Below, in pieces: positions 49,805-64,000 of a stretch of 64,000 bases of DNA. Location: positions 186,001 to 250,000 of IMG/VR virus record IMGVR_UViG_3300011113_000640, one strand, 5' to 3'. The translations under genes were made by a program, and so were the position numbers. The first letter of the stretch is position 1. Each line of letters begins with the position of its first letter. A model generated the notes under the pieces. The model was not told the DNA's origin and ran no database searches. It was given only the letters and a program-made list of their open reading frames with translations.

Positions 49805-50418
49805 TCCAGCCTGGACTTTGTCGCATCGAAGGCTTTGTGAAAATATCTGACCCAAACACGGGTGAAATTTTGGTTGACAAAAAGAATGCCATACATTACG
49901 AGAATATTTCAATTGCCATGGCCGAAACTCTCAGCAACAGAACCAGTGCGCAGGGCGGAGGCTGGATCTATGAAATGGCCTTTGGCAACGGCGGCAGCGC
50001 TGTGGATCCAACTGGTGTAATAACTTATCTACCACCCAACACAACTGGAGCCAATGCCAGTCTTTACAATCAAACTTATCAAAAAGTCGTGGACGACAAT
50101 TCAGCGTCCAACACAGATCCAGCCAACAACTACATGACCGTGGTTCATACTTCGGGTGCGGTTTATACCGATATCATCACCACCTGTTTGCTGGACTACG
50201 GTGAGCCCTTGGGCCAGCAGGCCTTTGACAACAGCACAAATTTCAACGGTGAGTACGTGTTTGATGAACTGGGTCTTAAAGCCTGGAACGGCAGTGCTTC
50301 AAATCTGTTGCTGATCACGCATGTGATTTTCCATCCAGTACAAAAGAGCTTGAATCGCCAGATACAGATAGATTATACCCTGCGTATACAGACACTTACA
50401 AACTTGAGTGCCGCATAA
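49801..50418 (+). CDS. Virion structural protein (baseplate/fibre attachment)
   Basis: NAIHYEN, MAFGNGG, CLLDYGEP, FDELGL, THVIFHPVQKSLNR. Structural gene context. Confidence 0.7.
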   Translation: MIQPGLCRIEGFVKISDPNTGEILVDKKNAIHYENISIAMAETLSNRTSAQGGGWIYEMAFGNGGSAVDPTGVITYLPPNTTGANASLYNQTYQKVVDDNSASNTDPANNYMTVVHTSGAVYTDIITTCLLDYGEPLGQQAFDNSTNFNGEYVFDELGLKAWNGSASNLLLITHVIFHPVQKSLNRQIQIDYTLRIQTLTNLSAA

Positions 50419-50465: not shown

Positions 50466-51869
50466 ATGGCATATACAATTAGTCTAACCGATGGCAACGT
50501 GTTTGCTACCATAGCCGACGGCACCATCAACACAGCCAGTTCCATGGTGCTGGTTGGTAGAAACTACGCTGGATACGGACAGTTTTTAGACACTAATTTT
50601 ATACACTTGTTGGAAAATTCCAGCAATACAACAGCACCCGGCGCACCACTTACTGGTCAACTATGGTGGGATTCAGGCAATGGCCTGCTCAAGGTCTACA
50701 ACGGAAGCACATTCAAAACAGTTTCGGCAGCCACGGCCAGCAGTTCAGCTCCCAGCGGTGCCAACAGCGTCGTGGGCGATCTTTGGTATGACACTGTCAA
50801 TGCACAGTTAAATGTCTACACCGGCGCAACTTGGTTGTTGGTAGGTCCACAAAGCACATCAGGACAAGGCACTTCGGGTGCGATCGTTTCCACGGTCACA
50901 GACAATCTCAGTGTGAATCACGTTGTGGTCCAACTCTGGGTCAACAACAGCATTGTGGGCATGATCAGCAAAGATGCCACTTTTGTGCCTGGTACAGCTA
51001 TCGGCGGAGGATGGGGCATACAAGCGGTCAGTCCAGGTATAACCTTGGCCACCACAGTGGGCACACAGACACCATTGTTCAATGGCACAGCCACTGTGGC
51101 TCAAAGTTTGTTGGGATTCAATCCTTCGGCATTCATGCAGACCGGCAACAACACCGGCACCACAGGCACTCTCAGCGTGACCAACAACACTGGTTTGTTT
51201 GTGGGCCTCAACAGCGATTTCCGTGCATTTATTTCGGGCACGCAAGTCAACCTACAGAATCAAACCACCAATGGCAATCTTGTTATTGGTGTATCTAACT
51301 TTGCCAACTCCATACAAGTCAATGGCACAACCGGGGTGGTCACTATTCCAAGCCTGTCATTCTCAGCATTTGGTGACATAACGGTTGGTAATGTTATAAA
51401 TGCCAATGGTAATGGCGTAGGCAACATCGGTAATTCAACAGGCTACTTTAATACTATATTTGCCCAGGCCACTAGTGCCCAGTACGCAGACGTGGCTGAA
51501 AGATTTGCCTCAGACCAAGAATATCCAGCTGGCACTGTGGTGGAACTGGGCGGCACAGCCGAAATTACCAGTAGTAAGCAGGATTTGAGCGATAATGTGT
51601 TTGGAGTCATAAGTACACGTGCAGCCTATCTAATGAACAGTGCAGCAGGAAATGATCAAACTCATCCTCCTGTGGCTATCACAGGCCGTGTGCCAGTTAG
51701 AGTGATTGGCAGTGTTAAAAAGGGAGATAGATTGGTTGGTGCAGGCGGCGGGTTGGCTCGAGCAGCCAAGGCAGGAGAAATTACTGCTTTCAATGTGATT
51801 GGACGAGCATTGCATGACAAATCGGATGATGGACTAGGCTCAATAGAAGCCATTGTAATGATTAAATAG
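50466..51869 (+). CDS. Tail fibre protein with a C-terminal autocleaving chaperone-like (peptidase G2/S74-type) domain
   Basis: LVGRNYAGYG, GQLWWD/GDLWYD repeats, ATSAQYADVAERF...PVAITGRVPVRVIG..KGDRLV. Confidence 0.8.
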   Translation: MAYTISLTDGNVFATIADGTINTASSMVLVGRNYAGYGQFLDTNFIHLLENSSNTTAPGAPLTGQLWWDSGNGLLKVYNGSTFKTVSAATASSSAPSGANSVVGDLWYDTVNAQLNVYTGATWLLVGPQSTSGQGTSGAIVSTVTDNLSVNHVVVQLWVNNSIVGMISKDATFVPGTAIGGGWGIQAVSPGITLATTVGTQTPLFNGTATVAQSLLGFNPSAFMQTGNNTGTTGTLSVTNNTGLFVGLNSDFRAFISGTQVNLQNQTTNGNLVIGVSNFANSIQVNGTTGVVTIPSLSFSAFGDITVGNVINANGNGVGNIGNSTGYFNTIFAQATSAQYADVAERFASDQEYPAGTVVELGGTAEITSSKQDLSDNVFGVISTRAAYLMNSAAGNDQTHPPVAITGRVPVRVIGSVKKGDRLVGAGGGLARAAKAGEITAFNVIGRALHDKSDDGLGSIEAIVMIK

Positions 51870-51942: not shown

Positions 51943-52926
51943 ATGACATATTCAGTTGGCGGACTAATAGAAGCAACAGACTATAACGGGTTTGTTAGCA
52001 CCACAGCAAATGCAAATATCAATGCTACCTGGAACAGCACCTATGGCCAAACTGCATTGAGCACTGTCAGCGCCGGCGGGGTAGTAACAGCCACACAATG
52101 GTCCACATTGAACTCGACCATTTCTACCATGGCCAGCCATCAGAATACCACAATTACTAGTAGGACCAACCCAACTGCAGGTAATACCATCACCATATTG
52201 AACAACGTCAACACCGACATTGGCAGTTGCTATACACGACGTTTTTTTGCAGCTGGCAGTGGTGCTCAATTCACAGGTTGGACCGGAACTGCCAGCCAGA
52301 CCAGCAAGGTTGGAGACACCAATACCAACTGGACAATCACGTTCACAGACACCATTACCTTTGCCAACGCCACGGCCTGTACCAACTTTTTTGGCGCCGG
52401 TGGCTTGATCAAGACTGAATTCAGCAAGACCAGCACCGGTGAAGATGCCGATCCAGAGTGGAACAACCTGGTCAATTCCATCTGCGGAGACGTGTATTTT
52501 TCTTCTGATGCATCCAGCAAGACCATAGCAGGCACGTCATACACAGGAACCACGGTCATTGGTGGCTCAGGAACACCATCCACTTTGGCCACTGGCACAG
52601 GATTCAATCAACTGTCTACCGGCGTGCCGGTAACCATCTACAAACAGTTTGATACGGCTTATACCTATACCACCAACTATGTTGAAGTCATTGTTACCAA
52701 AACTTCAGCCACAGTGTTGACCTTTACCACAAACTGGTTCTCGGCGGCACGAAGCACATCTGGAAGCAGCCGAAGCATTTCAGGCGGTACAGCCACAACA
52801 GGCATCACGTTTGGAACAGCTCCTACCACGGTGGTTACATATTTCCCACCATCAACATCTTTCTTGACCAACACCTGGGGTGCACCCACAGTGGCCAGCA
52901 CAGTCAGCGCAACACCTTACAGTTAA
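51943..52926 (+). CDS. Thr/Ser-rich virion structural protein
   Basis: MTYSVGGLIEATDYN, YGQTAL, NFFGAGG. Follows the tail-fibre gene. Confidence 0.7.
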   Translation: MTYSVGGLIEATDYNGFVSTTANANINATWNSTYGQTALSTVSAGGVVTATQWSTLNSTISTMASHQNTTITSRTNPTAGNTITILNNVNTDIGSCYTRRFFAAGSGAQFTGWTGTASQTSKVGDTNTNWTITFTDTITFANATACTNFFGAGGLIKTEFSKTSTGEDADPEWNNLVNSICGDVYFSSDASSKTIAGTSYTGTTVIGGSGTPSTLATGTGFNQLSTGVPVTIYKQFDTAYTYTTNYVEVIVTKTSATVLTFTTNWFSAARSTSGSSRSISGGTATTGITFGTAPTTVVTYFPPSTSFLTNTWGAPTVASTVSATPYS

Positions 52927-52945: not shown

Positions 52946-52965
52946 AAAGGGGCTTCGGCCCCTTT
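52946..52965 (+). terminator. Rho-independent terminator ending the tail operon
   Basis: AAAGGGGC-TTCG-GCCCCTTT with a cUUCGg loop. Confidence 0.8.
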
Positions 52966-52991
52966 ACCTTATCTAGTTTTTGCTGTATAAT
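52963..52991 (+). promoter_or_regulatory. sigma70-type promoter for the glycosyltransferase/radical SAM operon
   Basis: TTTACC-17 nt-TATAAT. ATG 52998 sits at the expected +1, implying a leaderless transcript. Confidence 0.65.
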
Positions 52992-52997
52992 ATCTAC

Positions 52998-53300
52998 ATG
53001 GATACCAACGAACTCATCTCCCACAGCCGCGCCCGTTTCGATCATCACCAAGCACGCCAGGTATTGAAAGAAAAATATCAAGCTAAATTTGTTTTTGCCC
53101 ATGCTGGCGGCATGTGGCAAGCTGGCCCAGAATTATTGACCTTGTTGAAATGTTGTTCAGGCCCAGTGGTCATTTTGGACCTGTATGAAACACCTGTGCA
53201 AGTCAACGCCGAAGAATTTTATGAACAAGTTTTACAACGCTGGCAAGAACAACTCAATGCCTGGTTGGTAGAATATCAGGAAATGAACAAAAATAGATGA
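52998..53300 (+). CDS. Hypothetical protein
   Basis: Start moved to MDTNELISH. ATGA-coupled to the next gene. Confidence 0.7.
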   Translation: MDTNELISHSRARFDHHQARQVLKEKYQAKFVFAHAGGMWQAGPELLTLLKCCSGPVVILDLYETPVQVNAEEFYEQVLQRWQEQLNAWLVEYQEMNKNR

Positions 53301-54103
53301 CACGCGGTGTACTGATTTTTGCTTTCAACAACGAGCATGTGGACTATTTGAGCATGGCCGCTTGGTCAGCTCAACGAATTCACCGACACCTTGATTTACC
53401 TGTGTGTGTAGTAACCGACAGGACCGACGCCTGTGACAACAAACATTTTGATCGAGTAGTGCTAGTAGATCTGCCCAGCTCGGGCCGTCCACGCTATTTC
53501 AAAGACTACAAAAAAGTAGCAGTGTGGCACAACACCAATCGAGCCAATGCTTATGAATTGTCACCCTGGGACCATACTTTGGTCTTGGATGCGGACTATG
53601 TGGTGGCCTCCGATCAATTGGCCTGTTTGTTTGATGTTGACCAAGATTTTCTAGCCCATCGATGGGCGCATGATGTGTCCGGTCAAGGGGCATTCTACGA
53701 CAACAACTGGTTTGGCATGTATCGCATGCCCATGAGCTGGGCCACGGTCATGTGTTTCCAACGCAGTAAAAAAGCTCAATTCATATTTGACACCATGCAA
53801 ATGATACGCGACAACTGGGATCATTACCGACATCTTTATCACATTGGGGAAAACAGCTATCGCAACGATTACTCAATGAGCATAGCTCAAAATCTAGTGG
53901 ATGGACACACGCTGTCATCGCCACACATACCCTGGAGTCTGGTCACAGTTACTCCAGAAACCAAGCTGGAACAAGTTGATCAAGATACATACAAAATCAC
54001 CTATGAAACCGCAGAATCAAAAATCAAATGGATGTATTTGAAACAAGATTTCCATGCCATGGGCAAACAGGCCTTGGAGACCATAATTGCCGGTAACAGC
54101 TGA
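53297..54103 (+). CDS. Putative GT-A glycosyltransferase (GT8-like)
   Basis: RGVLIFAFN, AYELSPWDHTLVLDADY (DxD), WATVM, YRND. Confidence 0.7.
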   Translation: MTRGVLIFAFNNEHVDYLSMAAWSAQRIHRHLDLPVCVVTDRTDACDNKHFDRVVLVDLPSSGRPRYFKDYKKVAVWHNTNRANAYELSPWDHTLVLDADYVVASDQLACLFDVDQDFLAHRWAHDVSGQGAFYDNNWFGMYRMPMSWATVMCFQRSKKAQFIFDTMQMIRDNWDHYRHLYHIGENSYRNDYSMSIAQNLVDGHTLSSPHIPWSLVTVTPETKLEQVDQDTYKITYETAESKIKWMYLKQDFHAMGKQALETIIAGNS

Positions 54104-54827
54104 ACGCGGCTATGTCATACCGGCCATAAATTCAGGCCAGGTTGATTTTGTGGCCTGTGCCGAACAGTTAGCAGACAGTCTACGCCAATATCACCCCGAC
54201 GCCAACATAACCATACTCACAAAAGAAATGTTGCCATACGGTGATCAGGGTGGTTGGGCCAATGATTGGCAGTGTTTTCAAGCCAGCCCTTACCGACAGA
54301 CCATCAAACTGGAAGCCGACATGTTGGTAACCAGTCCTGTTGATCATTGGTGGACCTTGTTTGAAAACCGCGATGTTGTGATCAGTCAAGGTTGCAGAAA
54401 TTTTTACAACGAATCTGCCACATCAAGAAAATACCGACAGTTGTTTGACAACAACCAACTGCCCGATGTTTACAATGCTATAACCTACTGGCGTCTCAGT
54501 GCTACAGCGCAAGAATTTTTTTCGCGGGTGCGAGAGATATTTGAAAACTGGGAACGATTCAAATGTCTTTTAAAATTCCCCGATGAAGCGCCCAGCACTG
54601 ATGTGGTCTATGCCATGGTAGCAGTGATCATGGGACCAGAACGAGTGATGTTGCCGCAAGGACTAGGGCCGTCGATAACGCACATGAAACAGTCAATCAT
54701 TCCTACGCAAACATCTGACTGGACCAAAGAACTGGTCTGGGAAAATACAGATCCAGGCTTGCGTGTACAGACTGTGGCACAGTCGGGATTGTTTCACTAT
54801 CACATCAAAGATTGGAGAGCAACATGA
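54087..54827 (+). CDS. Putative GT-A glycosyltransferase, paralog of the upstream gene
   Basis: RGYVIPA, ASPYRQTIKLEADM (ExD), STDVVYA, THMK. Confidence 0.65.
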   Translation: MPVTAERGYVIPAINSGQVDFVACAEQLADSLRQYHPDANITILTKEMLPYGDQGGWANDWQCFQASPYRQTIKLEADMLVTSPVDHWWTLFENRDVVISQGCRNFYNESATSRKYRQLFDNNQLPDVYNAITYWRLSATAQEFFSRVREIFENWERFKCLLKFPDEAPSTDVVYAMVAVIMGPERVMLPQGLGPSITHMKQSIIPTQTSDWTKELVWENTDPGLRVQTVAQSGLFHYHIKDWRAT

Positions 54828-55096
54828 GTGATGATTCGCAACGTATCAAACACAGCCGACGCATCAGCAGAACACGTGATGCAGAATTGCGCCAGGTCAG
54901 AATAGCCCGGGCCCATGGTATCACTGTAAAAGAATATCATAGATATGCCAAACATCACGCCATGAACTGTGGCCGTCCAAATTGTTTGCTTTGCACAAAT
55001 CCCCGTCGCACCTGGAAAGAAAAAACCATACAGGAAAAAAGTTTCGAGGGGCAGATACGTGCCGATCAGAGAAAACCCGACGACCATGATGACTGA
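54824..55096 (+). CDS. Small basic protein with a His/Cys motif
   Basis: HHAMNCGRPNCLLCTNPR. ATGA-coupled start. Confidence 0.65.
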   Translation: MSDDSQRIKHSRRISRTRDAELRQVRIARAHGITVKEYHRYAKHHAMNCGRPNCLLCTNPRRTWKEKTIQEKSFEGQIRADQRKPDDHDD

Positions 55097-55442
55097 ACAA
55101 GAGTTTTTAGAGATATGGCTTAGTCAAACCGTTACTCAAGTTGAAATTGAATATCGACTCTACTATGATGCGCAAGGATGGCCCTTATTTTACAGCACCG
55201 AACAGGTAGAAGGTAATTACATTGTTGTTGACCGACAAACATACCTAGACAGCCCCAAGCACATTCGAATTGTCGAAGGTAAAATCAAACGCATCAAAGT
55301 TTTATTTGGAAAAAAATTAGTACCTGCGGAACAGGGACAATCCTGTGATTCAGCAGATGTGTGTGTGATAGTCGCAGATCAGTTGTCCAGTAAAAAATGG
55401 GCCATAAAACACGAGGAACCCGAGGAAGATGAAGCAAGTTGA
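55086..55442 (+). CDS. Hypothetical protein
   Basis: Start at MMTEQEFLE; contains EYRLYYD. Overlaps both neighbours in the operon. Confidence 0.65.
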   Translation: MMTEQEFLEIWLSQTVTQVEIEYRLYYDAQGWPLFYSTEQVEGNYIVVDRQTYLDSPKHIRIVEGKIKRIKVLFGKKLVPAEQGQSCDSADVCVIVADQLSSKKWAIKHEEPEEDEAS

Positions 55443-56358
55443 CATAGCAGATTTAGATTGCATATATTTGACCTATGATGAGCCACAGAAAGAGGAATTC
55501 TGGGTGCGAATCAAGAACATGATTCCCTGGGCCAAACGAGTAGATGGAGTCCAAGGAAGTGACGCTGCACACAAAGCAGCCGGCGAGGCCAGCGACACTG
55601 AACGTTTCATATTGATCGATGGCGACAACATACCCAATGAACGTTTTTTTAACCTGACCTTGGAATTGCCAGATGGCGAATGGGAAAATGCTGTATTCCG
55701 CTGGCGGGCGAGAAATCATGTCAATGGCCTTATGTATGGCAATGGTGGAATCAGTTCGTGGACTAGAACTCATGTGCGTAACATGCGCACCCACGAAGCT
55801 TCCGAAGGAGCCACCGAAACCGAAGTAGAATTTTGTTTTCATCCACTATATTGGCCCATGCACGATTGTTACAGTACAACATATCCCAATGGCAGTGCCT
55901 TCCATGCCTGGCGTGCTGGATTCCGTGAAGGTGTCAAGATGTGCTTGAATTATGGAGCCAGACCCACAGTGTCTGCTTTCCGTGAGCGAGTGCATCAACG
56001 CAATCTTGATCACTTGACCATATGGCACAATGTGGGTCGTGATGTAGAACATGGAATCTGGGCCATAGCCGGCAGCAGGATGGGCACTTACATGACCATG
56101 ATCACGCCGCAGTGGGATCATCGCATGGTGCAAGACTTCGCAGAATTACAAAAACTTTGGGACACAGTCAAAGATTCGAACCCAGAAATCGTATGTGGTC
56201 GTGTGGCCGAAGATCTTGCTACACAGTTGAATCTGCCCATGACGGTAATGCAGGCTCCAGAAAGTGTTTTTTTCAAACAACACTATAGGTCAAACTGGCA
56301 CAATCAAGGTGTCATGGTTAGAGAAATGGATGTGATTCGGAGGCAAGAAGGGTGGTAA
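55429..56358 (+). CDS. Putative glycosyltransferase-like protein (DxD)
   Basis: YLTYDEP, RVDGVQGSDAAHKAA, FILIDGDN, NGLMYGNGG, AWRAGFREGVKM. Confidence 0.6.
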   Translation: MKQVDIADLDCIYLTYDEPQKEEFWVRIKNMIPWAKRVDGVQGSDAAHKAAGEASDTERFILIDGDNIPNERFFNLTLELPDGEWENAVFRWRARNHVNGLMYGNGGISSWTRTHVRNMRTHEASEGATETEVEFCFHPLYWPMHDCYSTTYPNGSAFHAWRAGFREGVKMCLNYGARPTVSAFRERVHQRNLDHLTIWHNVGRDVEHGIWAIAGSRMGTYMTMITPQWDHRMVQDFAELQKLWDTVKDSNPEIVCGRVAEDLATQLNLPMTVMQAPESVFFKQHYRSNWHNQGVMVREMDVIRRQEGW

Positions 56359-57770
56359 ACAACAAAGGTGACGAAGTTACCAAAGAGTTTAAAAGTGTTT
56401 TTTTAAACAGCGCAGAACAAATGCAACAGGCTCTAGGCAAAGGTTTGTGCCTGGCCAAGTGGAAACAGGTCAGCCTGCACTTACCCACAGGATTAAATAA
56501 CAGTTGCTATCATCCACCCTTGCACGAAATACCCGCTGAATTATTGGCAGATAATCCCAGCGCCTTACACAATACTCCATACAAAAAACAACAAAGAAAG
56601 ATCATGCTCAAGCATGAAAGACCCACGGAATGTGGATACTGCTGGGCCATGGAGGATAATGGCAAACTCAGCGATCGTCATTATAGATCAGGCGAGCCTT
56701 GGGCCGCTAAAGATTTTGATAGTATTATAAATTCAACCGGAGATGAGGATGTTGTACCTAGTTATGTTGAAGTTAACTTTAATCACGCTTGTAATTTGGC
56801 ATGTAGCTACTGTAGTCCTCAATTTAGTTCAACCTGGCAACAAGAAATGGATCAGCATGGCGCTTATCCTACTAGCACTAGACACAACGATCCTAGTCAT
56901 TTTGTTGGCCGCAACCGTCCTATCCCCGTTAGAGAAGATAATCCTTATGTAGATGCCTTCTGGTCTTGGTGGCCCGCACTGTATCCAGAACTCAAACATT
57001 TCCGCATGACCGGCGGCGAGCCTATGTTGGACAAAAATACCTATCGTGTGTTTGATTATGTGTTGGCCAATCCCAAACCAGACTTACATTTAAATGTAAC
57101 CAGTAACTTCAGCGTGGATGAGAAGTCGTGGCAGAAGTATTTAGGCTATGTCAAAGAGCTATGTGAAGGCGAACGGATCGAACACTTCATGCAGTACATT
57201 AGTCTCGATAGCTTTGGACCTCAAGCCGAATACATCAGACACGGCTTGGATTTTGATTTGCTGTGGGATCGTGTGAATCAATTCTTGACAGAGATCCCGG
57301 GCCGTAACAGCGTAACATTTATTGTGACCATGAACAATTTAAGTGTCACAGGCTTACCACATTTGTTTGCTGGCATACTGGGACTTAGAAAGATCTATTC
57401 AACAACCTATCAACGAGTATGGTTTGACACACCAGTGCTACGTCAACCCACCTGGCAAAGTCTGCAACTGTTGCCAGAAAGCTATGTGGAGCAACTGGAA
57501 CATCTCTGGGCCTGGATGATACGACAGATCGAAACTGAATCAACCCGCTTCCAAGGATTCAAAGACTATGAGATAGCACGCCTGGATCGTGACATAGCCT
57601 GGATGCGCGACGGACAGAAACTAGATTCTGCATACGTCAAACAAAACAAGGCAGATTTTTATAAATTCTTTGCCGAGCATGATCGCCGTCGTGGCACTGA
57701 CTTTCTACGGACTTTTCCTGAAATGAAGACCTGGTGGGCAGAATGTGAGTATCATGCTAGGCAATCGTAA
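56352..57770 (+). CDS. Radical SAM protein with an N-terminal twitch-like domain
   Basis: CLAKW...SCYH...CGYC; CNLACSYC; TGGEP. Confidence 0.9.
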   Translation: MVNNKGDEVTKEFKSVFLNSAEQMQQALGKGLCLAKWKQVSLHLPTGLNNSCYHPPLHEIPAELLADNPSALHNTPYKKQQRKIMLKHERPTECGYCWAMEDNGKLSDRHYRSGEPWAAKDFDSIINSTGDEDVVPSYVEVNFNHACNLACSYCSPQFSSTWQQEMDQHGAYPTSTRHNDPSHFVGRNRPIPVREDNPYVDAFWSWWPALYPELKHFRMTGGEPMLDKNTYRVFDYVLANPKPDLHLNVTSNFSVDEKSWQKYLGYVKELCEGERIEHFMQYISLDSFGPQAEYIRHGLDFDLLWDRVNQFLTEIPGRNSVTFIVTMNNLSVTGLPHLFAGILGLRKIYSTTYQRVWFDTPVLRQPTWQSLQLLPESYVEQLEHLWAWMIRQIETESTRFQGFKDYEIARLDRDIAWMRDGQKLDSAYVKQNKADFYKFFAEHDRRRGTDFLRTFPEMKTWWAECEYHARQS

Positions 57771-58935
57771 ATTAATCATAGACGATCACTCCGAGGTTTA
57801 TAGAGAACTGTGGCCTTGGGCCGACGGCGAGTTTTGGGATATCACCCAACACCAGATTGTTCCAGGTGCAGTTTACATATTTTGTAGAGAGCATGTCAAC
57901 AAATACAATTATGAAATACAACAGCTGGCTCGCAGTGACCAGGTAACTGTGGTCATAGAAAATGCTGCCGAAGGTTCCGAAACTCTGGTAACCTGGTGTT
58001 TTATCAAAGGGTTAGTGCCACTGATTGAACAAGGCAAGATCCTGCTCATAGGCGGCGGGGACATGGATCCTGACAAGTGGCCCTACATGAGCTACGAATA
58101 TTTCCTGCCAAAGATCTTTGATTTTGATGAAAATGTCGAAGCCGGCGCCAGGCTAGATAAATATTTCAGTCAAACAGTTAAACCTTATAAATTTTTGTTT
58201 TTGAATGGCCGACTGCGAGCACATAGGAAATATCTACAGGAAAGATTCCGGACCACTGGCGTTTTAGAACAAAGCCTGTGGACCAACCTTGACACAGATC
58301 TTGCCTTGATCAAAAGCGTACCACAACAACGTTGGCAAAATTTCAACAATCTCAAATCCGTAAAATTGGAATATTTGCACAATGGCGTTGACATGATAGA
58401 AGCGCCAACATCCTTGAAACTGCTATCCGAGTCCTATGAGGCACCCAGATTCAGGACCAATCTTGACAAGATACCCAGTGGTGGAAATGTCAAACGCAAC
58501 TTGTTTGACAATGCCTGGGGAGATGCCACAGTAGATGGTAACGCCTACAGAGACACCTATTTCAGCCTGGTCACCGAGACAGTGTTTAACTATCCCTACA
58601 GTTTTAGGACAGAAAAGATCTGGAAACCCATGGCTGTAGGGCATCCTTGGATAGCAGTGGCTAACACAGGTTTCTATAGAGATCTACACCACATGGGATT
58701 CAAAACATTTGCACATGTCTTAGATGAATCATTTGACTCAATCGCAGACAACCAATCGCGTATTGAAAGAATAGCACAGGTCGTGGAAGACTTATGTCGC
58801 CAAGATCTTGCAAGTTTCTATCAAGAATGCTATAATGTATGTAAATACAATCAACAGCATTATGCGGAATACAGACACCGTGTTCCGCAAGAACTTCCGC
58901 AACAGTTCCAACGATTTATAGAAAAATATCAATGA
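57754..58935 (+). CDS. Putative glycosyltransferase-like protein (GT10/exostosin-like C-terminus)
   Basis: FLFLNGRLRAHR, LVTET...RTEKIWKP...GFKTF...DESFD. Paralog of 18099..19256. Confidence 0.55.
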   Translation: MLGNRKLIIDDHSEVYRELWPWADGEFWDITQHQIVPGAVYIFCREHVNKYNYEIQQLARSDQVTVVIENAAEGSETLVTWCFIKGLVPLIEQGKILLIGGGDMDPDKWPYMSYEYFLPKIFDFDENVEAGARLDKYFSQTVKPYKFLFLNGRLRAHRKYLQERFRTTGVLEQSLWTNLDTDLALIKSVPQQRWQNFNNLKSVKLEYLHNGVDMIEAPTSLKLLSESYEAPRFRTNLDKIPSGGNVKRNLFDNAWGDATVDGNAYRDTYFSLVTETVFNYPYSFRTEKIWKPMAVGHPWIAVANTGFYRDLHHMGFKTFAHVLDESFDSIADNQSRIERIAQVVEDLCRQDLASFYQECYNVCKYNQQHYAEYRHRVPQELPQQFQRFIEKYQ

Positions 58936-60269
58936 CGGATTTAGAATTTCGTAGACAACACCTTGACACCAAAAGTGCCAGCTTCTGTGGCGCCAAATGG
59001 TACAATGCCACCATATGGTTGGGATCTGGTCAGACCACCAGTTGTCATCATCCACCAGCTCATGCCATAGACACAGAAGCTATCAAAACCAATCCCAAGG
59101 CCATACATAATACCCCACAAAAGAAACAAGATCGAAATCAAATGCAACAGGGACAACGTCCTGCCGGATGTGAATACTGTTGGAAGATTGAAGACATGGG
59201 AGTGGATGCCATCAGTGATCGTGTGTATAAAAGCAAAATATATTCCATAGAGGCCTTGGATGAAGCATACAACAAAGACTCTCAAGAGGACATGAATCTT
59301 CGTACTCTTGAAATAGCGTTTGACCGCACTTGTCAATTTGCTTGTAGTTATTGCAATCCTGCCTTTAGTTCAACCTGGGTCAAGGATATCAAAAACAACG
59401 GTGCTTACACAAATCTTGTCAGTGATGGTCGCAATCATTTCACACACAAACACGACAGTGCTCAGTTGTATCAATTTGGCGAAACCAATCCTTACGTAGA
59501 AGCCTTCTTTGCTTGGTGGGAGTCTGACCTACACAAGACCTTGCAGGAGTTGAGAATCACTGGAGGAGAACCTACCATGAGTGGCGAGCTGTGGAAGTTG
59601 ATTGACTGGTTCAAATCCAACAAAGGAAAAAGCTCAACTCGGTTGGCCATCAACAGTAACTTGGGCATGGATAGACCAAAGCTGTTTGAATTTAGAGATG
59701 CTTTGAAGGACATTCCGCACGTGGAAATCTACACCAGCATGGAAGCGGTAGGAACGCAGGCTGAATACATACGAGACGGCCTGGACTATGATCTATGGAT
59801 GCACAACGTACAAGAACTTCTTGAACACGATCACATACGTGCAGTCCACTGTATGGCTACCATCAATGCCCTGTGCCTGGACAGTTTGGATGAATTTTTA
59901 GATCAATGGATACGATTGAAAAAGGTGTATGGCCGCGAAAGAGTGAACTACACATTGAATATATTACGTTTTCCCAGTTTTCAAAGTCCGTTGGTGTTGC
60001 CAAAAAATCTTTTGGAACTCTACAGTGATAAGTTAACCCAGTGGTTGGATCAACATCGTGATCAACCATACATGCATGAACATGAAATCAATCACATGAC
60101 TCGTTTGATCGAGTATCTAAATCGTGTAAAAAAACCACACAGCGAAGCATTTGAAATGCCCAAACTTTTCAATGACTTTAAACAATTTTACACACAATAC
60201 GATCAACGTCGCAACAAAATTTTTGTTGCGACATTTCCTCGCTTGGCAGAATGGTATCAAACACTATGA
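58932..60269 (+). CDS. Radical SAM protein with an N-terminal twitch-like domain
   Basis: CGAKW...SCHH...CEYC; CQFACSYC; TGGEP. Confidence 0.9.
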   Translation: MTDLEFRRQHLDTKSASFCGAKWYNATIWLGSGQTTSCHHPPAHAIDTEAIKTNPKAIHNTPQKKQDRNQMQQGQRPAGCEYCWKIEDMGVDAISDRVYKSKIYSIEALDEAYNKDSQEDMNLRTLEIAFDRTCQFACSYCNPAFSSTWVKDIKNNGAYTNLVSDGRNHFTHKHDSAQLYQFGETNPYVEAFFAWWESDLHKTLQELRITGGEPTMSGELWKLIDWFKSNKGKSSTRLAINSNLGMDRPKLFEFRDALKDIPHVEIYTSMEAVGTQAEYIRDGLDYDLWMHNVQELLEHDHIRAVHCMATINALCLDSLDEFLDQWIRLKKVYGRERVNYTLNILRFPSFQSPLVLPKNLLELYSDKLTQWLDQHRDQPYMHEHEINHMTRLIEYLNRVKKPHSEAFEMPKLFNDFKQFYTQYDQRRNKIFVATFPRLAEWYQTL

Positions 60270-61582
60270 CAAAAATTTTAGGCAAATACAACTGGAATGA
60301 TCGAGTACCTAGTTATATTCCGTTGGAGCAGTTGACAGACGTTCAGCGTCATAGGCTCATAGACAGTGAAACATTTTGCATGTTGCCTTGGATACACTTG
60401 CATGCCTGGCCCGATGGACGTGCATATCCCTGTTGCATGGGTCGAGCCCAGCATTCTGTAGGCAACTTCAAAGAAAAGCCCATGCGTGAAATCTGGAATG
60501 ATCAACCCATGCGCGAGATGCGCTTAAACATGCTGGAAGATAAACCTTGTGCCGAGTGCGGTCACTGTTATGAACAAGAGAAATCTGGATTTGCCAGCAT
60601 GAGAAACAATTCAAACAAGAATTTTGGACAACACATTCAAAAAATAGATGATACCCGTGCCGACGGCAGTCTGCCTGATTTTAAACTACACTATTGGGAC
60701 GTGCGATTTAGCAATATCTGTCAACTGAAGTGCCGCAGCTGTGGAAGCATATTCAGCAGTCGCTGGTATGACGATGATGTCAAACTCTGGGGCAAAGAGC
60801 TAAGACCTCGTGTGAGCTTTGCTGGACGACACGAAGAGGATGTATGGGAGCAGATGCAGGAACATGTTCCCCACTTGGACCAGATATACTTTGCTGGCGG
60901 TGAGCCCTTGATCATGGAGGAACATAATCGCATACTTAAACTGCTGATTGAAAAAGGCAACACCAAGGTGCATTTGATCTACAATACCAATCTCAATGAA
61001 CTGCGATACAAACGTGAATCGGTGTTGGACCTGTGGAAGCATTTTCCTAATATTTGTGTAGCGGCCAGTTTAGATGACATGGGAGCTCGGGCTGAAATCA
61101 TACGCAGCGGTACTGATTGGGACAAAGTAGAACAAAACATTAGAGATTTAAAACGAGAATGTCCGCATATAGATTTCATGATCAGTCCCACCCTGAGTGT
61201 CATGAACATCTGGAACTTTACACGATTTCATCGTTACATGGTCGAGTCTGGATTTATTGAAGCCAAAGATTTCAACTTGAATATCTTACAAGGGCCCAAG
61301 GAATATAGAATAGACTTGTTACCTCAGGATATAAAGTTTCGTTTCAAGCAAGAATTTGAACAACATATCGAATGGTTACGCCCCTTGGATACAATACAGC
61401 GAGCAACTGGCGGATTTGAAGCTGCCATACAGTTCATGATGGCACAAGATAACAGTTATTTGCTTGGCGAGTTTTGGGAAACCACCAGCGATATGGATTG
61501 GAGTCGTGATGAACGTTTGATCTCGGCTGTTCCTGAACTGGCCGAAATATTACAATACAAACCAGCACACACACGAGTATGA
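60266..61582 (+). CDS. Radical SAM protein with an N-terminal twitch-like domain
   Basis: CMLPW...PCC...CGHC; CQLKCRSC; AGGEP. ATGA-coupled start at 60266. Confidence 0.9.
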   Translation: MTKILGKYNWNDRVPSYIPLEQLTDVQRHRLIDSETFCMLPWIHLHAWPDGRAYPCCMGRAQHSVGNFKEKPMREIWNDQPMREMRLNMLEDKPCAECGHCYEQEKSGFASMRNNSNKNFGQHIQKIDDTRADGSLPDFKLHYWDVRFSNICQLKCRSCGSIFSSRWYDDDVKLWGKELRPRVSFAGRHEEDVWEQMQEHVPHLDQIYFAGGEPLIMEEHNRILKLLIEKGNTKVHLIYNTNLNELRYKRESVLDLWKHFPNICVAASLDDMGARAEIIRSGTDWDKVEQNIRDLKRECPHIDFMISPTLSVMNIWNFTRFHRYMVESGFIEAKDFNLNILQGPKEYRIDLLPQDIKFRFKQEFEQHIEWLRPLDTIQRATGGFEAAIQFMMAQDNSYLLGEFWETTSDMDWSRDERLISAVPELAEILQYKPAHTRV

Positions 61583-62799
61583 AACTACCACACGAAAAAT
61601 TCTGTGTACTACCTTGGGTCAGCCTGGAAGCCAGTCCCATTGGCACGGTCAGACCCTGTTGCTTGGCCGATGATGAAATTGTGGACAACAACGGAGAAAA
61701 ATTCAATCTTGCCGCAGCCAATTTTGCCAACATACAAAACAGCAACGACATGCGCAGTTTACGTCAACAATTTTTGGATGGACAACAACCACAGACCTGT
61801 AGAAAATGCTGGCGTGAAGAGCGCAGTGGCCGCACCAGTAAACGTCAGCATACCTTGGACAGATTAAAACACATCTTGGCCGACCATGATTCGTGGACAG
61901 CAGATGCCAAGCCATTGATATTTTTAGATCTCAAACTGGGCAATATCTGCAATCTCAAATGCCGAATCTGTGGTAGTTGGAGTTCCAGTACATTTGCCAC
62001 CGAAGAGTTACAATGGCTCAAACGCGGTGAAGACAAAAAACAAAGCCATCACTATCAAATGTTGCGACAAGGTGCTTGGCCCAGAGAAAATCAGCAGTTT
62101 TGGTCAGAGATAGATCAGATAGTGAATCAAATACGATACATAGAATTCACTGGTGGCGAACCTTTCATGATACAAGAACACTTTGACATGTTGCAAGGGT
62201 TGATAGATCGTGGCATAGCCCATCAGGTAGAAATACACTACAACACCAATGGAACCCAATGGCCAGAACAAGCCGAAGCGATATGGCGTCATTTCAAAAC
62301 TGTTGAGATTGCGTTCAGCATTGATGATGTGGGTGCTAGATTTGAATATCAACGGACCAATGCAGTTTGGGATGAAGTAGTGGCCAACATTGAAAAATTT
62401 AAACAGTTGCGTCAACGTCACAGCAACATAAAACTACAAGCGTGCATCACAGTCAATGTTTTCAATGTATATTATTTGGAATCAGTGGCCTTATGGGTTG
62501 CACAGCAAGGTTTTAATTTCGTTTATTGGAACATGTTGCATGATGCATATTATTTTAGCATAGCCACACTGCCAGAATCAGCCAAGATTGGAATAGCCAA
62601 AAAATTACAACAGGCACAGGTACCAGAATCAATCCGACGAGAGTTTGAAAAAATAATTGAATTTATGAACAACGGTGCTGGTCTTGATGGCAAGTTATTG
62701 AAAATTAGAACCACAGATTTTGACTACAAACGCGGTCAAAACTTGGCCGTGGTTGCACCTGAATATGCTGCCCTGATAGATTATGCCGGCCCCAATTAA
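61579..62799 (+). CDS. Radical SAM protein with an N-terminal twitch-like domain
   Basis: CVLPW...PCC...CRKC; CNLKCRIC; TGGEP. Confidence 0.9.
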   Translation: MKLPHEKFCVLPWVSLEASPIGTVRPCCLADDEIVDNNGEKFNLAAANFANIQNSNDMRSLRQQFLDGQQPQTCRKCWREERSGRTSKRQHTLDRLKHILADHDSWTADAKPLIFLDLKLGNICNLKCRICGSWSSSTFATEELQWLKRGEDKKQSHHYQMLRQGAWPRENQQFWSEIDQIVNQIRYIEFTGGEPFMIQEHFDMLQGLIDRGIAHQVEIHYNTNGTQWPEQAEAIWRHFKTVEIAFSIDDVGARFEYQRTNAVWDEVVANIEKFKQLRQRHSNIKLQACITVNVFNVYYLESVALWVAQQGFNFVYWNMLHDAYYFSIATLPESAKIGIAKKLQQAQVPESIRREFEKIIEFMNNGAGLDGKLLKIRTTDFDYKRGQNLAVVAPEYAALIDYAGPN

Positions 62800-64000
62800 T
62801 CGTCCTGAAACCCTGTGCATGGCCCCATGGACACACACATATCTCAGTCCACAAACCGAAAGACGCATGTGCTGTGCCAGCCGAGAACCCGCACAAAACT
62901 TCGAACAGTATATAGACACAGCTGCAGGTTCTGGAAAATATACACCTGTGAGCCTGGATGAGCACTGGAACAATCCTCACATACGAAGTGTGCGACTGAG
63001 GATGATGCAGGGAGAAATTTTGCCCGAGTGTGAAGTATGTAACAATAAGTTATTGAACACTGACGTATACAGAGACTACTTCAATCGATTATTTGGTCAC
63101 AAATATGAAGAGTGCATGCGTGCCACCGATCGCTATGGGTTCACCAAAGTAAGACCAGTCAGTTGGGATTATAGGTTCAGTAATCTATGTAACTTCAAAT
63201 GTCGCATGTGTGGAGACATGCTGAGCAGTGCCTGGGAAAGTGAACAACGACAGCACAATATGATTGACTGGTCAAATCCAAAAAATACATGGATGCGACC
63301 CGAGGTACGAGAAAAGATTTCAGCTTATCAAGATTCGCAGATTGAGGCCGAATTCGCTTTGGCGGTAGAGCAACATCGTGTGGAAGAAGTATACTGGGTG
63401 GGTGGTGAACCACTCATGTACGAACAACACTGGCGTTATATGCAACGTATTATTGAACTTGGAGATGGACCACGTGTGTATGCCAGATACAACACCAATC
63501 TCAGTAGGGTAGATTATCGCGGAACAAATCTTTATCGTGATATTCTGGCACACATACGTGATTGGCAAATCTGTGCAAGCCTGGATGGCACTGGTGCTAC
63601 GGGCGAATATATAAGGACAGGGTTGGATTATGTTGCATGGTTAGAGAATTTCAAACAAGGGCTAGAAATTACACATCATCGCAGACAGATGCGCATTGAT
63701 TTCACGTTGACATTGCCTGGCCTGTTTGAAGTTGTAAATATCCAGAGACTGGCCGATGAGTTAAATGTAGACATACTGGCCAAAGTAATATTTAGTTTTA
63801 CTCCAGACATTGTAATGAGTCCCTTGGCATTGCCCAGACCTGTTTTAGAGAGAGTGGTTGATGAACTTGCTGACCAAATACCCAACGGAGCACTCCGAGA
63901 TGTGCTAAATCAACTCAAACAACGACCGACCTTTGCCGAACAATGGCCAGATTCTTATCAGGCAGGACTTGCAAAAGGCAAGGCTCGTGTGCTAAAATTA
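62783..64000 (+). CDS. Radical SAM protein with an N-terminal twitch-like domain (runs off the window end)
   Basis: Translated by hand: MPAPINRPETLCMAPW...MCC...CEVC...RFSNLCNFKCRMC...VGGEP. Absent from the ORF track because no stop occurs in the window. Confidence 0.88.
   Translation, partial: MPAPINRPETLCMAPWTHTYLSPQTERRMCCASREPAQNFEQYIDTAAGSGKYTPVSLDEHWNNPHIRSVRLRMMQGEILPECEVCNNKLLNTDVYRDYFNRLFGHKYEECMRATDRYGFTKVRPVSWDYRFSNLCNFKCRMCGDMLSSAWESEQRQHNMIDWSNPKNTWMRPEVREKISAYQDSQIEAEFALAVEQHRVEEVYWVGGEPLMYEQHWRYMQRIIELGDGPRVYARYNTNLSRVDYRGTNLYRDILAHIRDWQICASLDGTGATGEYIRTGLDYVAWLENFKQGLEITHHRRQMRIDFTLTLPGLFEVVNIQRLADELNVDILAKVIFSFTPDIVMSPLALPRPVLERVVDELADQIPNGALRDVLNQLKQRPTFAEQWPDSYQAGLAKGKARVLKL

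Follow-up and report, generated by a model that had tools for sequence, protein, structure and literature searches.

Known systems for viral glycosylation and radical tailoring

Several viruses encode their own glycosylation machinery. In mycobacteriophages and giant viruses, virus-encoded glycosyltransferases (GTs), accompanied in giant viruses by NDP-amino-sugar pathways, lie next to structural genes and decorate capsid, tail or fibril proteins (giant viruses: PMC4691112). No radical SAM (rSAM), amidinotransferase or carbamoyltransferase component is known in these systems. Sugar C-H chemistry is performed by twitch/SPASM rSAM enzymes such as BtrN, DesII, AprD4 and BlsE, which carry one auxiliary cluster in a C-terminal domain and work beside DegT aminotransferases, dehydratases, amidino- and carbamoyltransferases and GTs in aminoglycoside and deoxysugar pathways. 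In the mycofactocin pathway, the rSAM/SPASM enzyme MftC acts on a ribosomal peptide that is later oligoglycosylated by the GT2 enzyme MftF (PMC7491314). This pathway has a single rSAM with a C-terminal SPASM domain and an RRE partner, and yields a redox cofactor. Finally, the Aeromonas jumbo phage vB_AerVM_332-Vera (Chimallinviridae) carries eight rSAM genes among the baseplate, portal and tail-fibre genes of its structural gene cluster, an arrangement referred to as "highly unusual" and for which no function has been proposed (PMC12390700).

Here, a gene island from an abundant, uncultured freshwater jumbo phage is compared with these systems. The window analysed is a stretch of 64,000 nucleotides (IMGVR_UViG_3300011113_000640, positions 186,001 to 250,000) from a genome of 320 kb. 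The island follows the tail-fibre-like genes directly and combines six N-terminal-twitch rSAM enzymes with GT-like proteins and amino-sugar enzymes. The GT-like proteins g02, g03, g06 and g08 reach no curated GT model and differ in this from the GT families of the mycobacteriophage and giant virus systems, and none of the features peculiar to the mycofactocin pathway listed above is seen. The phage vB_AerVM_332-Vera belongs to a different phage family and was not detected by tblastn searches of the phage collection with g10 and g07.

Gene organization of the island

The original prediction described an operon of at least twelve overlapping, coupled genes directly after the tail-fibre genes, with five twitch-type rSAM enzymes and four GT-like genes behind one sigma70-like promoter. 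This observation was confirmed. From position 52,998 to the window end, twelve genes with overlapping or abutting ends follow the only intergenic gap (72 nt), and four junctions are ATGA overlaps (Table 1). The start first assigned to g01, at 52980, is a TTG inside the promoter, and the in-frame ATG is 18 nt further on. The promoter-like motif matches the consensus at 10 of 12 positions. Such matches are common in this DNA (40 found against 27 expected from shuffles), so that the motif alone is weak, but it is located in the only gap, just after a hairpin seen by eye that was not listed as a terminator by the scan.

Table 1. Features of the fibre-like module and of the part of the island contained in the window.
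Feature	Position	Strand	Description	Supporting observations
u3	49801-50418	+	205-aa conserved structural-module protein upstream of the island	phrog_11259, 250 bits; median 80% identity in 31 collinear loci
u2	50466-51869	+	467-aa fibre- or spike-like virion protein	PHROG "virion structural protein" hits; weak C-terminal Peptidase_G2/IMC domain; relatives in PA5oct-type phages annotated virion structural protein or tail pin
u1	51943-52926	+	327-aa Ser/Thr-rich (34%) fibre-like protein, candidate substrate	No family hit; collinear with the operon in 50 loci; orthologs with 27-35% S+T against 11% in the enzymes
Hairpin and promoter-like motif	52949-52991 (hairpin 52949-52962, motif 52963-52991)	+	GGGGC-TTCG-GCCCC, then sigma70-like TTTACC-17-TATAAT	Consensus match only
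g01	52998-53300	+	100-aa acidic protein of unknown function	Conserved in 53 loci, median 59% identity; no family hit
g02	53297-54103	+	268-aa GT8-like (GT-A) candidate	D98-x-D100 invariant; paralog of g03 (hhalign 99.4%, E 6e-21); no Pfam hit
g03	54087-54827	+	246-aa GT8-like (GT-A) candidate	E76-A-D78 motif; phrog_1903, unknown function
g04	54824-55096	+	Basic Cys-containing protein of about 90 aa	Sub-clade only, in 9-10 of 58 loci; no family hit
g05	55086-55442	+	118-aa acidic protein of unknown function	In 54 loci but only 37% identical; no family hit
g06	55429-56358	+	309-aa GT-A/nucleotide-sugar-fold candidate	D64-G-D66-N67 invariant; median 72% identity
g07	56352-57770	+	472-aa N-terminal-twitch rSAM, C-x-C[YH]HPP subtype	NF033640, 314 bits; always next to g06, also in RsoM2USA
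g08	57745/57754-58935	+	393-396-aa GT-B-type GT candidate	RTEKIWKP block invariant; 40% identical, 1-4 paralogs per locus
g09	58932-60269	+	445-aa N-terminal-twitch rSAM, sister of g07	NF033640, 314.5 bits; 50% identical homolog in RsoM2USA near a carbamoyltransferase
g10	60251/60266-61582	+	438-443-aa N-terminal-twitch rSAM	NF033640, 403 bits; SPASM at residues 43-106; nests among bacterial homologs in the tree; two divergent alleles in the lineage (80% and about 48% identical)
g11	61579-62799	+	406-aa N-terminal-twitch rSAM	NF033640, 344 bits; SPASM at residues 9-78
g12	62783-64000	+	N-terminal-twitch rSAM cut by the window end	NF033640, 283 bits; complete (435 aa) in locus L001, positions 15039-16346

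The operon does not end at position 64,000 but is the left part of an island of about 23 kb. Beyond the window lie a NodU/CmcH-type carbamoyltransferase (Carbam_trans_N/C, E 3e-49), a sixth rSAM, an amidinotransferase that retains the catalytic Cys (E 5e-14 to AGAT, StrB1 and SxtG), a DegT/DnrJ/EryC1 aminotransferase (E 1e-58), an NDP-sugar epimerase/dehydratase (E 9e-46), a cytidylyltransferase-like gene (E 1e-12) and further g08-like and g06-like paralogs. No island protein has a hydrophobic segment long enough to span a membrane (maximum KD19 1.46).

The order u3-u2-u1-g01...g14 is collinear in about 55 independent viral contigs from many metagenomes, which is more than expected by chance, and each rSAM paralog has its own ortholog. 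A reduced version occurs in the cultured Ralstonia phage RsoM2USA, where g02-g03-x-g06-g07 directly follow the giant fibre gene block. The rSAMs (except g10, 48%), g06, g13, g14 and g16 are 63-78% identical across the lineage, whereas the GT-B-like g08 is 40% identical and varies in copy number. This pattern fits a conserved core chemistry with variable decoration.

The radical SAM enzymes

The five rSAM enzymes of the window contain intact CxxxCxxC (followed by SS) and GGEP motifs, and four auxiliary Cys (C..C...CxxC) are conserved in all paralogs. Pfam places a SPASM hit at the N terminus of g10, g11 and g12. All six rSAMs of the island pass, over their full length, the cut-off of NCBIfam NF033640 "twitch domain-containing radical SAM protein" (N_Twi_rSAM; 216-403 bits against 170), with which they share the N-terminal C..C(C)...CxxC domain and the CxxxCxxC-SS and GGEP motifs. 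This family is only a named subfamily for which no biochemical or structural characterization was found. The island differs in gathering six deep paralogs, 19-30% identical, in one phage locus. The paralogs are ancient, which fits the distinct sequential roles originally proposed for them.

The analogy with BtrN and MoaA drawn in the original prediction is not supported as a relationship. No solved structure or characterized enzyme was detectably close, the search against the PDB giving no hit, and only marginal similarity was found to BlsE (E 3e-4) and MoaA (about 1e-6), both far below the cut-offs. Membership in the sugar-acting twitch/SPASM group is not supported, and these enzymes remain a mechanistic analogy for sugar C-H chemistry.

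The glycosyltransferase-like proteins

Three DxD/ExD GT-A-like proteins and one TEK-motif GT-like protein had been predicted, and these assignments survive in softened form. The motifs are invariant across 24-25 orthologs (D98/D100 in g02, A77/D78 in g03 with E76 nearly invariant, D64-G-D66-N67 in g06), as is the RTEKIWKP block of g08. However, none of the four proteins reaches a Pfam or NCBIfam GT model, and the Foldseek E-values against the PDB are 0.01 or worse. The resemblance of g02 and g03 to GT8 is weak but consistent, their joint profile hitting glycogenin-1/2 at E 0.005. The predicted structure of g06 (AF2 pLDDT 75) gives a weak GT-A/nucleotidyltransferase fold signal, with IspD, GtrB, RmlA and STIV A197 as best Foldseek hits (E about 0.01, TM 0.4 or less). 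The g08 protein is modeled as GT-B (AF2 pLDDT 88): its PDB hits are nearly all GT-B at E 0.01-0.5, and BFVD hits include viral proteins named "GTB-type domain" and "Glycosyltransferase".

Bacterial contexts of the island families

The g06 family comprises 1,344 clusters, including fusions behind GT-B domains in bacterial clusters that resemble ribosomal-peptide (RiPP) biosynthesis clusters. Three such glyco-RiPP-like loci (L221, L222 and L225), undescribed as far as could be found, share the g06 domain (193-228 bits) and GT-B and GT-A-looking partners with the phage island. L221 and L222 also encode full-length N_Twi rSAMs (about 200 bits), whereas L225 has the same cluster without an rSAM. 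The bacterial clusters contain double-glycine-leader, Pro/Ser/Thr/Gly-rich precursor peptides, a C39-peptidase ABC exporter and HlyD. The phage island has none of these and no RRE or peptidase, and instead contains amino-sugar synthesis and fibre-like genes. PqqD lies next to four bacterial N_Twi loci. The radical chemistry may therefore act on a polypeptide rather than on a sugar. Nevertheless, most bacterial N_Twi rSAM loci show neither GTs nor peptides, and their neighbors include ChaN, PhoX, GDSL and SDR families. Some Bacteriovoracaceae loci pair the rSAMs with a carbamoyltransferase, DegT, a Zn-ADH, an amidohydrolase and a weak g13-like ORF, which looks like a small-molecule pathway. Two plasmid-borne bacterial N_Twi rSAMs are located in polysaccharide clusters with GT2/GT4/GT39 genes and ABC transporters.

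Proposed function

The original interpretation, a phage-encoded pathway building an unusual radical-modified glycan for virion proteins, DNA or the host surface with paralogs acting sequentially, is supported in part. The block is phage-encoded, with baseplate and fibre-like genes upstream, and its immediate flank is sugar-related. On present evidence, the preferred but tentative reading is that the island of this jumbo myophage is a wholly cytoplasmic system that glycosylates and radical-tailors phage structural proteins, most likely the Ser/Thr-rich fibre-like proteins encoded just upstream. In this view, the cytidylyltransferase-like protein, the epimerase/dehydratase and the aminotransferase of the right arm would make activated, unusual amino sugars, to which the amidinotransferase and the O-carbamoyltransferase would add guanidino and carbamoyl groups. 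The GT8-like g02 and g03, the g06 family and the variable GT-B-like g08 family would transfer the sugars to the protein and extend the glycan. The six rSAM paralogs would each abstract a hydrogen atom from a distinct C-H position, either on the sugar (epimerization, oxidation or deoxygenation, as in BtrN, DesII or AprD4) or on the polypeptide itself, as in RiPP maturases.

The analysis establishes the gene content, the family memberships, the conservation, the collinearity with fibre-like genes, the absence of membrane proteins and the peptide-linked bacterial context of two component families, while the substrate (virion, DNA or host surface), the product, the order of steps and late expression are inferred. 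There is no direct evidence of any glycoprotein, and there are no expression data, no RNA run having been listed. Adjacency to fibre genes may reflect only shared late transcription, and RsoM2USA has no obvious u1-like protein with 30% Ser/Thr. The lack of membrane-spanning segments nonetheless fits a soluble target.

Alternative functions are considered less likely. The enzyme set parallels aminoglycoside clusters, with an amidinotransferase of the StrB1/SxtG family, a carbamoyltransferase, a DegT aminotransferase, a dehydratase, twitch-type rSAMs and GTs, and the island could make a free aminoglycoside- or aminocyclitol-like guanidino/carbamoyl glycoside acting as a secondary metabolite or signaling compound. 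The Bacteriovoracaceae loci and the carbamoyltransferase-based metabolite cluster predicted in jumbo cyanophages by Iyer et al. (PMC7824862) are in line with this possibility. It remains doubtful since no exporter or resistance gene was seen in the island, which is strictly collinear with structural genes, the g06 family is linked to ribosomal peptides in bacteria, and the variable GT-B copy number resembles surface-glycan diversification more than a fixed metabolite. Hypermodification of phage DNA to evade restriction, in which the transferases and the carbamoyl- and amidinotransferases would decorate hydroxymethylated bases and the rSAMs would tailor the appended group, is also unlikely. T4-type DNA glucosyltransferases have the GT-B fold, a NodU-family carbamoyltransferase reportedly acts on 5hmC in phage DNA (MetaGPA study), and the pathway is soluble and highly conserved. 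However, no dNMP hydroxymethylase, kinase or other base-modification gene was found in the 64-kb window or in the 15 kb annotated beyond it. Several GT types and amino-sugar synthesis genes point to an oligosaccharide, the island lies inside the structural module, and the contig assembled readily from ordinary metagenomes.

Remodeling of host LPS or capsule, to block superinfection or prevent progeny from re-adsorbing to lysed cells, was proposed for GT clusters of jumbo cyanophages (Iyer et al. 2021, PMC7824862). GT8 includes LPS glycosyltransferases, and the two plasmid-borne polysaccharide clusters are consistent with such a role. This reading is unlikely as well, as no polyprenyl-phosphate transferase, flippase, polymerase or transporter is encoded, the core-like conservation across a diverse lineage is unexpected for host-serotype-specific enzymes, and the GT-like families are virus-specific. 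Phage accessory regions often accumulate paralogs and the bacterial N_Twi rSAM contexts are heterogeneous, but a selfish or neutral paralog array with incidental adjacency to GT-like genes is very improbable. Every paralog keeps all catalytic motifs and is maintained as a separate ortholog at 48-75% identity in about 50 contigs, in fixed order and with translational coupling, and the paralogs diverged before the lineage did.

Genomic setting of the operon

The region belongs to a viral contig of 320,541 bp (IMGVR_UViG_3300011113_000640). Upstream of the operon lies a structural module on the + strand, coding for virion proteins, a baseplate hub, gp25-like and wedge proteins (phrog_10646 at 939 bits), a 4,921-residue ORF and three fibre-like genes referred to as u3, u2 and u1. 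The large ORF is located directly after the baseplate wedge gene and presumably codes for a giant fibre or baseplate-attached protein. Its Ser + Thr content is 17%, rising to 24% locally, and the cultured Ralstonia jumbo phage RsoM2USA has a comparably placed gene of about 7.6 kb. A block of about 23 kb of minus-strand genes, coding for proteins of up to 714 residues, precedes the structural module. A near-identity DNA search against phage records returned no match, and the closest cultured relatives, jumbo phages of the Rak2/121Q/CBB/Atu_ph07/SCTP-2 type, share only about 35% amino-acid identity in the wedge protein. The DNA runs that hold the region are lake and freshwater metagenomes. The element is therefore a novel freshwater jumbo myophage.

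The u1 stop codon is followed by a 72-nt gap holding a GC hairpin and a TTTACC-17-TATAAT motif. This motif is by itself weak evidence for a promoter, since the region contains 40 such matches against 27 expected. Twelve + strand genes (g01 to g12) follow with overlapping ends, several of them ATGA overlaps. Five of the twelve (g07, g09, g10, g11 and g12) code for radical SAM proteins. The observation on which the original prediction was based, i.e. a run of overlapping genes combining five radical SAM enzymes and four glycosyltransferase (GT)-like genes after the fibre genes, is confirmed.

Location of the features and loci (window position p equals contig position 186,000 + p)
Feature	Location	Strand	Description
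Minus-strand block	window 48-23124	-	genes preceding the structural module
Giant ORF	window 34883-49648	+	4,921 aa, directly after the baseplate wedge gene
u1	window 52,926 (stop codon)	+	fibre-like gene upstream of the operon
g01	window 52998 (start)	+	first gene of the operon
g04	window 54824-55096		small, strongly basic protein (net +7) with a CGRPNCLLC motif
g10	window 60251-61582		radical SAM protein with two divergent forms
L059	L059:5600-6577		RsoM2USA_358, inside the fibre/g02-g07 block of RsoM2USA
L076	L076:7905-15536		bacterial tandem array of radical SAM paralogs (Halobacteriovoraceae and Oligoflexia MAGs, with L080)
L080	L080:5141-12546		bacterial tandem array of radical SAM paralogs (as L076)
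L142	OZ196521.1:161548-168284		Vibrio phage K566 radical SAM cluster
L221	Logan SRR22411500 contig		bacterial RiPP-like cluster
L222	GCA_036320465.1, JAYDYW010000017.1:148965-167214		bacterial RiPP-like cluster
L223			bacterial RiPP-like cluster
L225	GCA_039187085.1		bacterial RiPP-like cluster

Radical SAM proteins

All six radical SAM paralogs of the island, including g15 located beyond the window, are members of the NCBIfam subfamily NF033640 (N_Twi_rSAM, 'twitch domain-containing radical SAM protein'). They exceed its curated cut-off of 170 bits over the full model (positions 1-3 to 392-398), with 314 bits for g07, 314.5 for g09, 402.6 for g10, 344.1 for g11, 282.6 for g12 and 216.2 for g15. 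The cluster motif CxxxCxxC (C157/C161/C164), followed by SS in the five proteins of the operon, and the GGEP motif (G216-G217-E218 invariant) are retained in all six paralogs. The Pfam Radical_SAM model is above its cut-off for g10, g11 and g15 and below it for g07, g09 and g12.

The Cys-rich auxiliary domain of twitch/SPASM type is N-terminal to the radical SAM core. Pfam places SPASM at residues 43-106 in g10, 9-78 in g11 and 12-87 in g12, ahead of the Radical_SAM hit, and the conserved C..C(C)...CxxC lies in columns before CxxxCxxC. A twitch domain, with one auxiliary [4Fe-4S] cluster, is expected to carry three to four Cys ligands, as opposed to the seven-Cys motif of the full SPASM domain with two clusters. 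Four Cys are conserved in all paralogs and g10 has six in the domain, a count that rests on sequence alone.

The original prediction drew a parallel with BtrN and MoaA. Membership of the BtrN/DesII/AprD4-type sugar radical SAM enzymes or of MoaA was rejected, since no PDB sequence hit was obtained at E<=0.01, the equivalog models score far below their cut-offs and the auxiliary domain is at the opposite end of the protein. The resemblance to BtrN, DesII or AprD4 is one of proposed mechanism and pathway context only, and no homology beyond the superfamily was detected. The family NF033640 has no solved relative and no characterised member in the literature that could be searched.

Glycosyltransferase-like proteins

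None of the four GT-like proteins (g02, g03, g06 and g08) reaches a Pfam, NCBIfam or PADLOC-independent curated model. PHROGs likewise gave nothing usable, nor did PDB searches with single sequences and with first profiles. Softer evidence nevertheless supports in part the proposal that they are GT-like.

The proteins g02 and g03 are paralogs (hhalign 99.4%, E 6e-21). No Pfam or NCBIfam hit was found for 42 members, but a joint profile of 42 sequences hits glycogenin-1/2 (GT8, GT-A fold) over the first 100 or so residues, including the DxD region, at the weak E-value of 0.005, the top 19 hits being all glycogenins. The DxD-type metal/nucleotide-sugar motif is conserved: D98 and D100 are invariant in g02, A77 and D78 are invariant in g03 where E76 is at least 90% conserved, and D100 is invariant in the joint alignment.

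The AF2 model of g06 has a pLDDT of 74.8. Its best Foldseek PDB neighbours (IspD/IspDF, GtrB, RmlA, KdsB and STIV A197) are all nucleotide-sugar-binding GT-A or nucleotidyltransferase folds, but only at E 0.01-0.07 and TM 0.40 or less. The D64-G-D66-N67 motif is invariant. No Pfam hit was found, and hhalign showed no relationship between g06 and g02/g03.

The protein g08 models well (AF2 pLDDT 87.9, pTM 0.86). Its PDB neighbours are almost all GT-B enzymes (glycogen synthase, PglA, SenB at TM 0.42/0.50, MurG, TagF), but at E 0.01-0.5. In the viral structure library BFVD, 26 hits were obtained at E<=1e-3, including the giant-virus protein Indivirus 'Glycosyltransferase' (E 4e-5) and a phage protein fused to a UDP-glucose/GDP-mannose dehydrogenase domain, and the Moumouvirus 'GTB-type domain' protein is just weaker (E 2e-3). 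Atlas structural neighbours of this family are fused to NDP-sugar epimerase/dehydratase or methyltransferase domains. The original prediction noted a TEK motif in g08, a motif that resembles one of GT10 fucosyltransferases. An assignment of g08 to GT10 was rejected, as 22 members gave no Pfam hit and no PDB profile hit was found. The only signals are an Atlas feature score of 0.80 to PF00852 clusters and E 0.017-0.07 to viral proteins named fucosyltransferase.

Extent of the island

Two further loci of the same contig extend the view by 15 kb beyond the window. Downstream of g12 are found g13 and the carbamoyltransferase g14. The 368-residue g13 gave no Pfam, NCBIfam or Atlas signal and only a marginal aminoglycoside-acetyltransferase hit (E 0.013). 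The protein g14 is of the NodU/CmcH O-carbamoyltransferase type, with Carbam_trans_N and Carbam_trans_C at 167 and 122 bits against cut-offs of 27 and 24 (Pfam E 3e-49), although the NodU equivalog itself is not reached (133 bits against 1000). The sixth N_Twi_rSAM g15 and the amidinotransferase g16 follow and are convergently transcribed. The g16 protein is homologous to AGAT (E 4.6e-14), StrB1 (E 4e-12) and SxtG, and the alignment GGISCCTQDLRRRG against GGGFHCWTCDVRRRG keeps the C-terminal catalytic Cys, whereas Pfam itself gave no hit. Next come a g08-like paralog, a 598-residue protein with a g06-like domain, a DegT/DnrJ/EryC1 aminotransferase (E 1e-58), an NDP-sugar epimerase/4,6-dehydratase (E 9e-46), a cytidylyltransferase-like protein and another g08-like paralog. 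The island therefore spans about 23 kb and holds genuine nucleotide-amino-sugar genes. No island protein has a membrane-spanning segment. No leader-bearing precursor peptide, RRE/PqqD domain, leader peptidase or exporter was found among the island proteins by Pfam or NCBIfam, and the small ORFs g01, g04 and g05 show no double-glycine leader.

Conservation of the island

A scan of viral contigs with g08 returned 58 loci. In about 55 of them the order u3-u2-u1-g01-g02-g03-(g04)-g05-g06-g07-g08-g09-g10-g11-g12-g13-g14 is the same and each radical SAM paralog has its own ortholog. Median identities are high for g06 (72%), g07 (75%), g09 (68%), g11 (69%), g12 (73%), g14 (68%) and g16 (78%), and low for g02 (50%), g03 (54%), g05 (37%), g08 (40%), u1 (53%) and u2 (50%). 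The gene g01 is conserved in 53 loci, whereas g04 is inserted between g03 and g05 in only 9-10 of 58 loci. Extra g08-like paralogs are inserted at variable places, giving one to four per locus. The gene g10 exists as two divergent forms within an otherwise collinear island, about 80% identical in a few contigs and about 48% in most (the comparison included loci L005 and L006), while the neighbouring radical SAM proteins stay at 68-75%, which suggests allele replacement at this one position.

The search with g16 alone retrieved 78 loci at 77-88% identity, and g10 has more than 7,000 close relatives among the candidates scored in metagenomes. The phage RsoM2USA carries g02-g03-x-g06-g07-g06' directly after its giant fibre gene and, elsewhere, a g09 homolog (50% identical) next to a carbamoyltransferase (44% identical). 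Inside its fibre/g02-g07 block, the protein RsoM2USA_358 has an N-terminal GxxGxxG Rossmann motif and reads, judged by eye only, like an NDP-sugar epimerase/dehydratase. Additionally, GTDB MAG contigs labelled Porticoccaceae, Legionellales, Haliscomenobacter and Rickettsiales (loci L063-L066 and L135) carry the phage island itself, with g06 59-72% identical and g13, g14 and g16 68-80% identical. They are probably phage contigs binned into MAGs and give at best a weak hint about the host, with two Haliscomenobacter contigs of 148 and 183 kb.

Origin of the radical SAM paralogs

The paralogs are 19-30% identical to each other. In a tree with 106 bacterial homologs, obtained by a quick search and weak in its deep branches, they do not form one clade. 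The protein g10 nests among bacterial sequences, g07 and g09 group with the RsoM2USA proteins and one Bdellovibrionales sequence, and g11 and g15 branch separately, g15 with Vibrio phage K566. The duplication is therefore ancient, or the genes were acquired more than once. K566, a cultured or assembled Vibrio jumbo phage, has a cluster of four divergent N_Twi-type radical SAM genes whose surrounding hypothetical proteins match none of the GT-like families of the island. Bdellovibrionota also carry tandem arrays of up to five N_Twi_rSAM. In Halobacteriovoraceae and Oligoflexia MAGs (loci L076 and L080), arrays of five paralogs are flanked by PhoX and Ppx/GppA-type phosphatases and interleaved with proteins of about 230 residues of unknown function.

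Genomic context of the bacterial relatives

The evidence that relatives bring on the substrate is mixed, and this is the main uncertainty. Two plasmid-borne bacterial N_Twi_rSAM sit in polysaccharide clusters. A glycan context was expected for bacterial loci, but a Pfam survey of 138 neighbours in 72 chromosomal loci showed no GT enrichment: the counts are Radical_SAM 11, ChaN-like 9, PhoX 5, PqqD 4, GDSL 4 and GT2 only 2. The argument that the family context proves sugar substrates was therefore abandoned. In some Bacteriovoracaceae MAGs (loci L139, L083 and L073), two or three N_Twi_rSAM are clustered with a carbamoyltransferase, a DegT aminotransferase, a Zn-dependent alcohol dehydrogenase, an amidohydrolase and a weak g13-like ORF. 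This gene set overlaps that of the phage and resembles small-molecule amino-sugar or cyclitol pathways.

A profile search with g06 found 1,344 clusters at 50% identity. Many are proteins of about 740 residues in which the g06 domain follows a GT-B domain (Glyco_tran_28_C or EryCIII-like_C). In L221 and L222, the latter a 278-kb bacterial contig, these fusions lie with a C39-peptidase ABC exporter, HlyD, a GT2-looking protein and one or two full-length N_Twi_rSAM (about 200 bits to the g10 model). They also lie with one to five small ORFs of 56-72 residues that share a double-glycine leader (..DFLL.GL.ELSE.EL.A.GGG) and have Pro/Ser/Thr/Gly/Cys-rich cores, the L222 precursor measuring 72 residues. 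L225 has the same cluster without a radical SAM protein, and L223 has a fusion plus a leader peptide. Across these four loci the precursors measure 56-77 residues and the GT2-looking protein about 230 residues, and no description of this class was found. In bacteria, therefore, the g06 domain, often together with this radical SAM family, works in clusters built like ribosomal-peptide (RiPP) pathways. The features of such pathways that are missing from the phage island are present only in the bacterial clusters L221, L222 and L225.

Proposed function and alternatives

Combining the content of the island, its conservation and the peptide-linked bacterial clusters, a cytoplasmic protein-maturation system is favored, although only tentatively. 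In this view, the right arm would supply activated amino sugars that can be guanidinylated and carbamoylated, g02, g03, g06 and the variable g08 family would transfer them to phage structural proteins, and the six radical SAM proteins would each perform one C-H abstraction, either on the glycan or on the polypeptide. The obvious candidate substrate is u1, which is encoded immediately upstream, is collinear in 50 loci and has 27-35% Ser + Thr against 11% in the enzymes. The gene content, the family memberships, the conservation, the solubility and the peptide-linked bacterial context were established by the analysis, whereas the target, the product, the timing of expression and the order of steps are inferred, as is the presence of any glycan on a virion protein, for which only adjacency to and collinearity with structural genes and a Ser/Thr-rich neighbour speak. 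The interpretation given in the original prediction, a pathway building a radical-modified glycan for virion proteins, DNA or the host surface, is partly supported: the sugar pathway is retained, the kinship with BtrN/MoaA and the GT family names are not, and for the target, which is inferred only, new evidence points to a protein substrate.

Other explanations were considered less likely. The production of a free aminoglycoside-like metabolite is the least improbable of them, DNA hypermodification and host-surface remodelling are each more doubtful still, and an array of unconnected paralogs is very unlikely. A bolder reading, less likely than not on present evidence but compatible with it, is that the island is a previously unrecognised kind of virus-encoded protein-maturation machine. 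An assembly line of six N-terminal-twitch radical SAM enzymes and virus-specific transferases would install radical-tailored, guanidinylated or carbamoylated glycans, or glycan-peptide crosslinks, on tail-fibre proteins. It would be evolutionarily related to an undescribed class of bacterial glycosylated RiPPs using the same g06 domain and radical SAM family on double-glycine-leader peptides. If so, a function would be given to the orphan N_Twi_rSAM family, a new RiPP class would be defined and a new layer of receptor-binding chemistry would be revealed in very abundant freshwater jumbo phages.

Relation to described systems

Virus-encoded glycosylation is found in giant viruses (PMC4691112). 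Mycobacteriophages also encode their own glycosylation. Jumbo cyanophage GT clusters and a carbamoyltransferase-based metabolite cluster were predicted by Iyer et al. (PMC7824862). None of these is known to include radical SAM enzymes, and no virus carrying its own glycosylation machinery is known with radical SAM, amidino- and carbamoyl-transfer chemistry. The island is built from an orphan enzyme family without any assigned reaction and is very widespread. Literature searches on the radical SAM family, on N-terminal SPASM/twitch domains and on jumbo-phage radical SAM/GT clusters found no description of this system. The only similar remark found concerns the Aeromonas phage 332-Vera, whose eight radical SAM genes inside the structural cluster are called 'highly unusual' by its authors (PMC12390700). 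Homology to the present genes was not detected.

Given the number of relatives of g10 and g06, an unknown chemistry is therefore, as inferred from sequence, being run on a large scale in lakes. If the target is the tail fibre, the island would be a new determinant of adsorption, host range or virion stability. The bacterial RiPP-like clusters are a separate lead for natural-product discovery. The cultured phage RsoM2USA carries a minimal version of the island (g02-g03-g06-g07, plus g09 with a carbamoyltransferase), which makes the question accessible to direct experiment.
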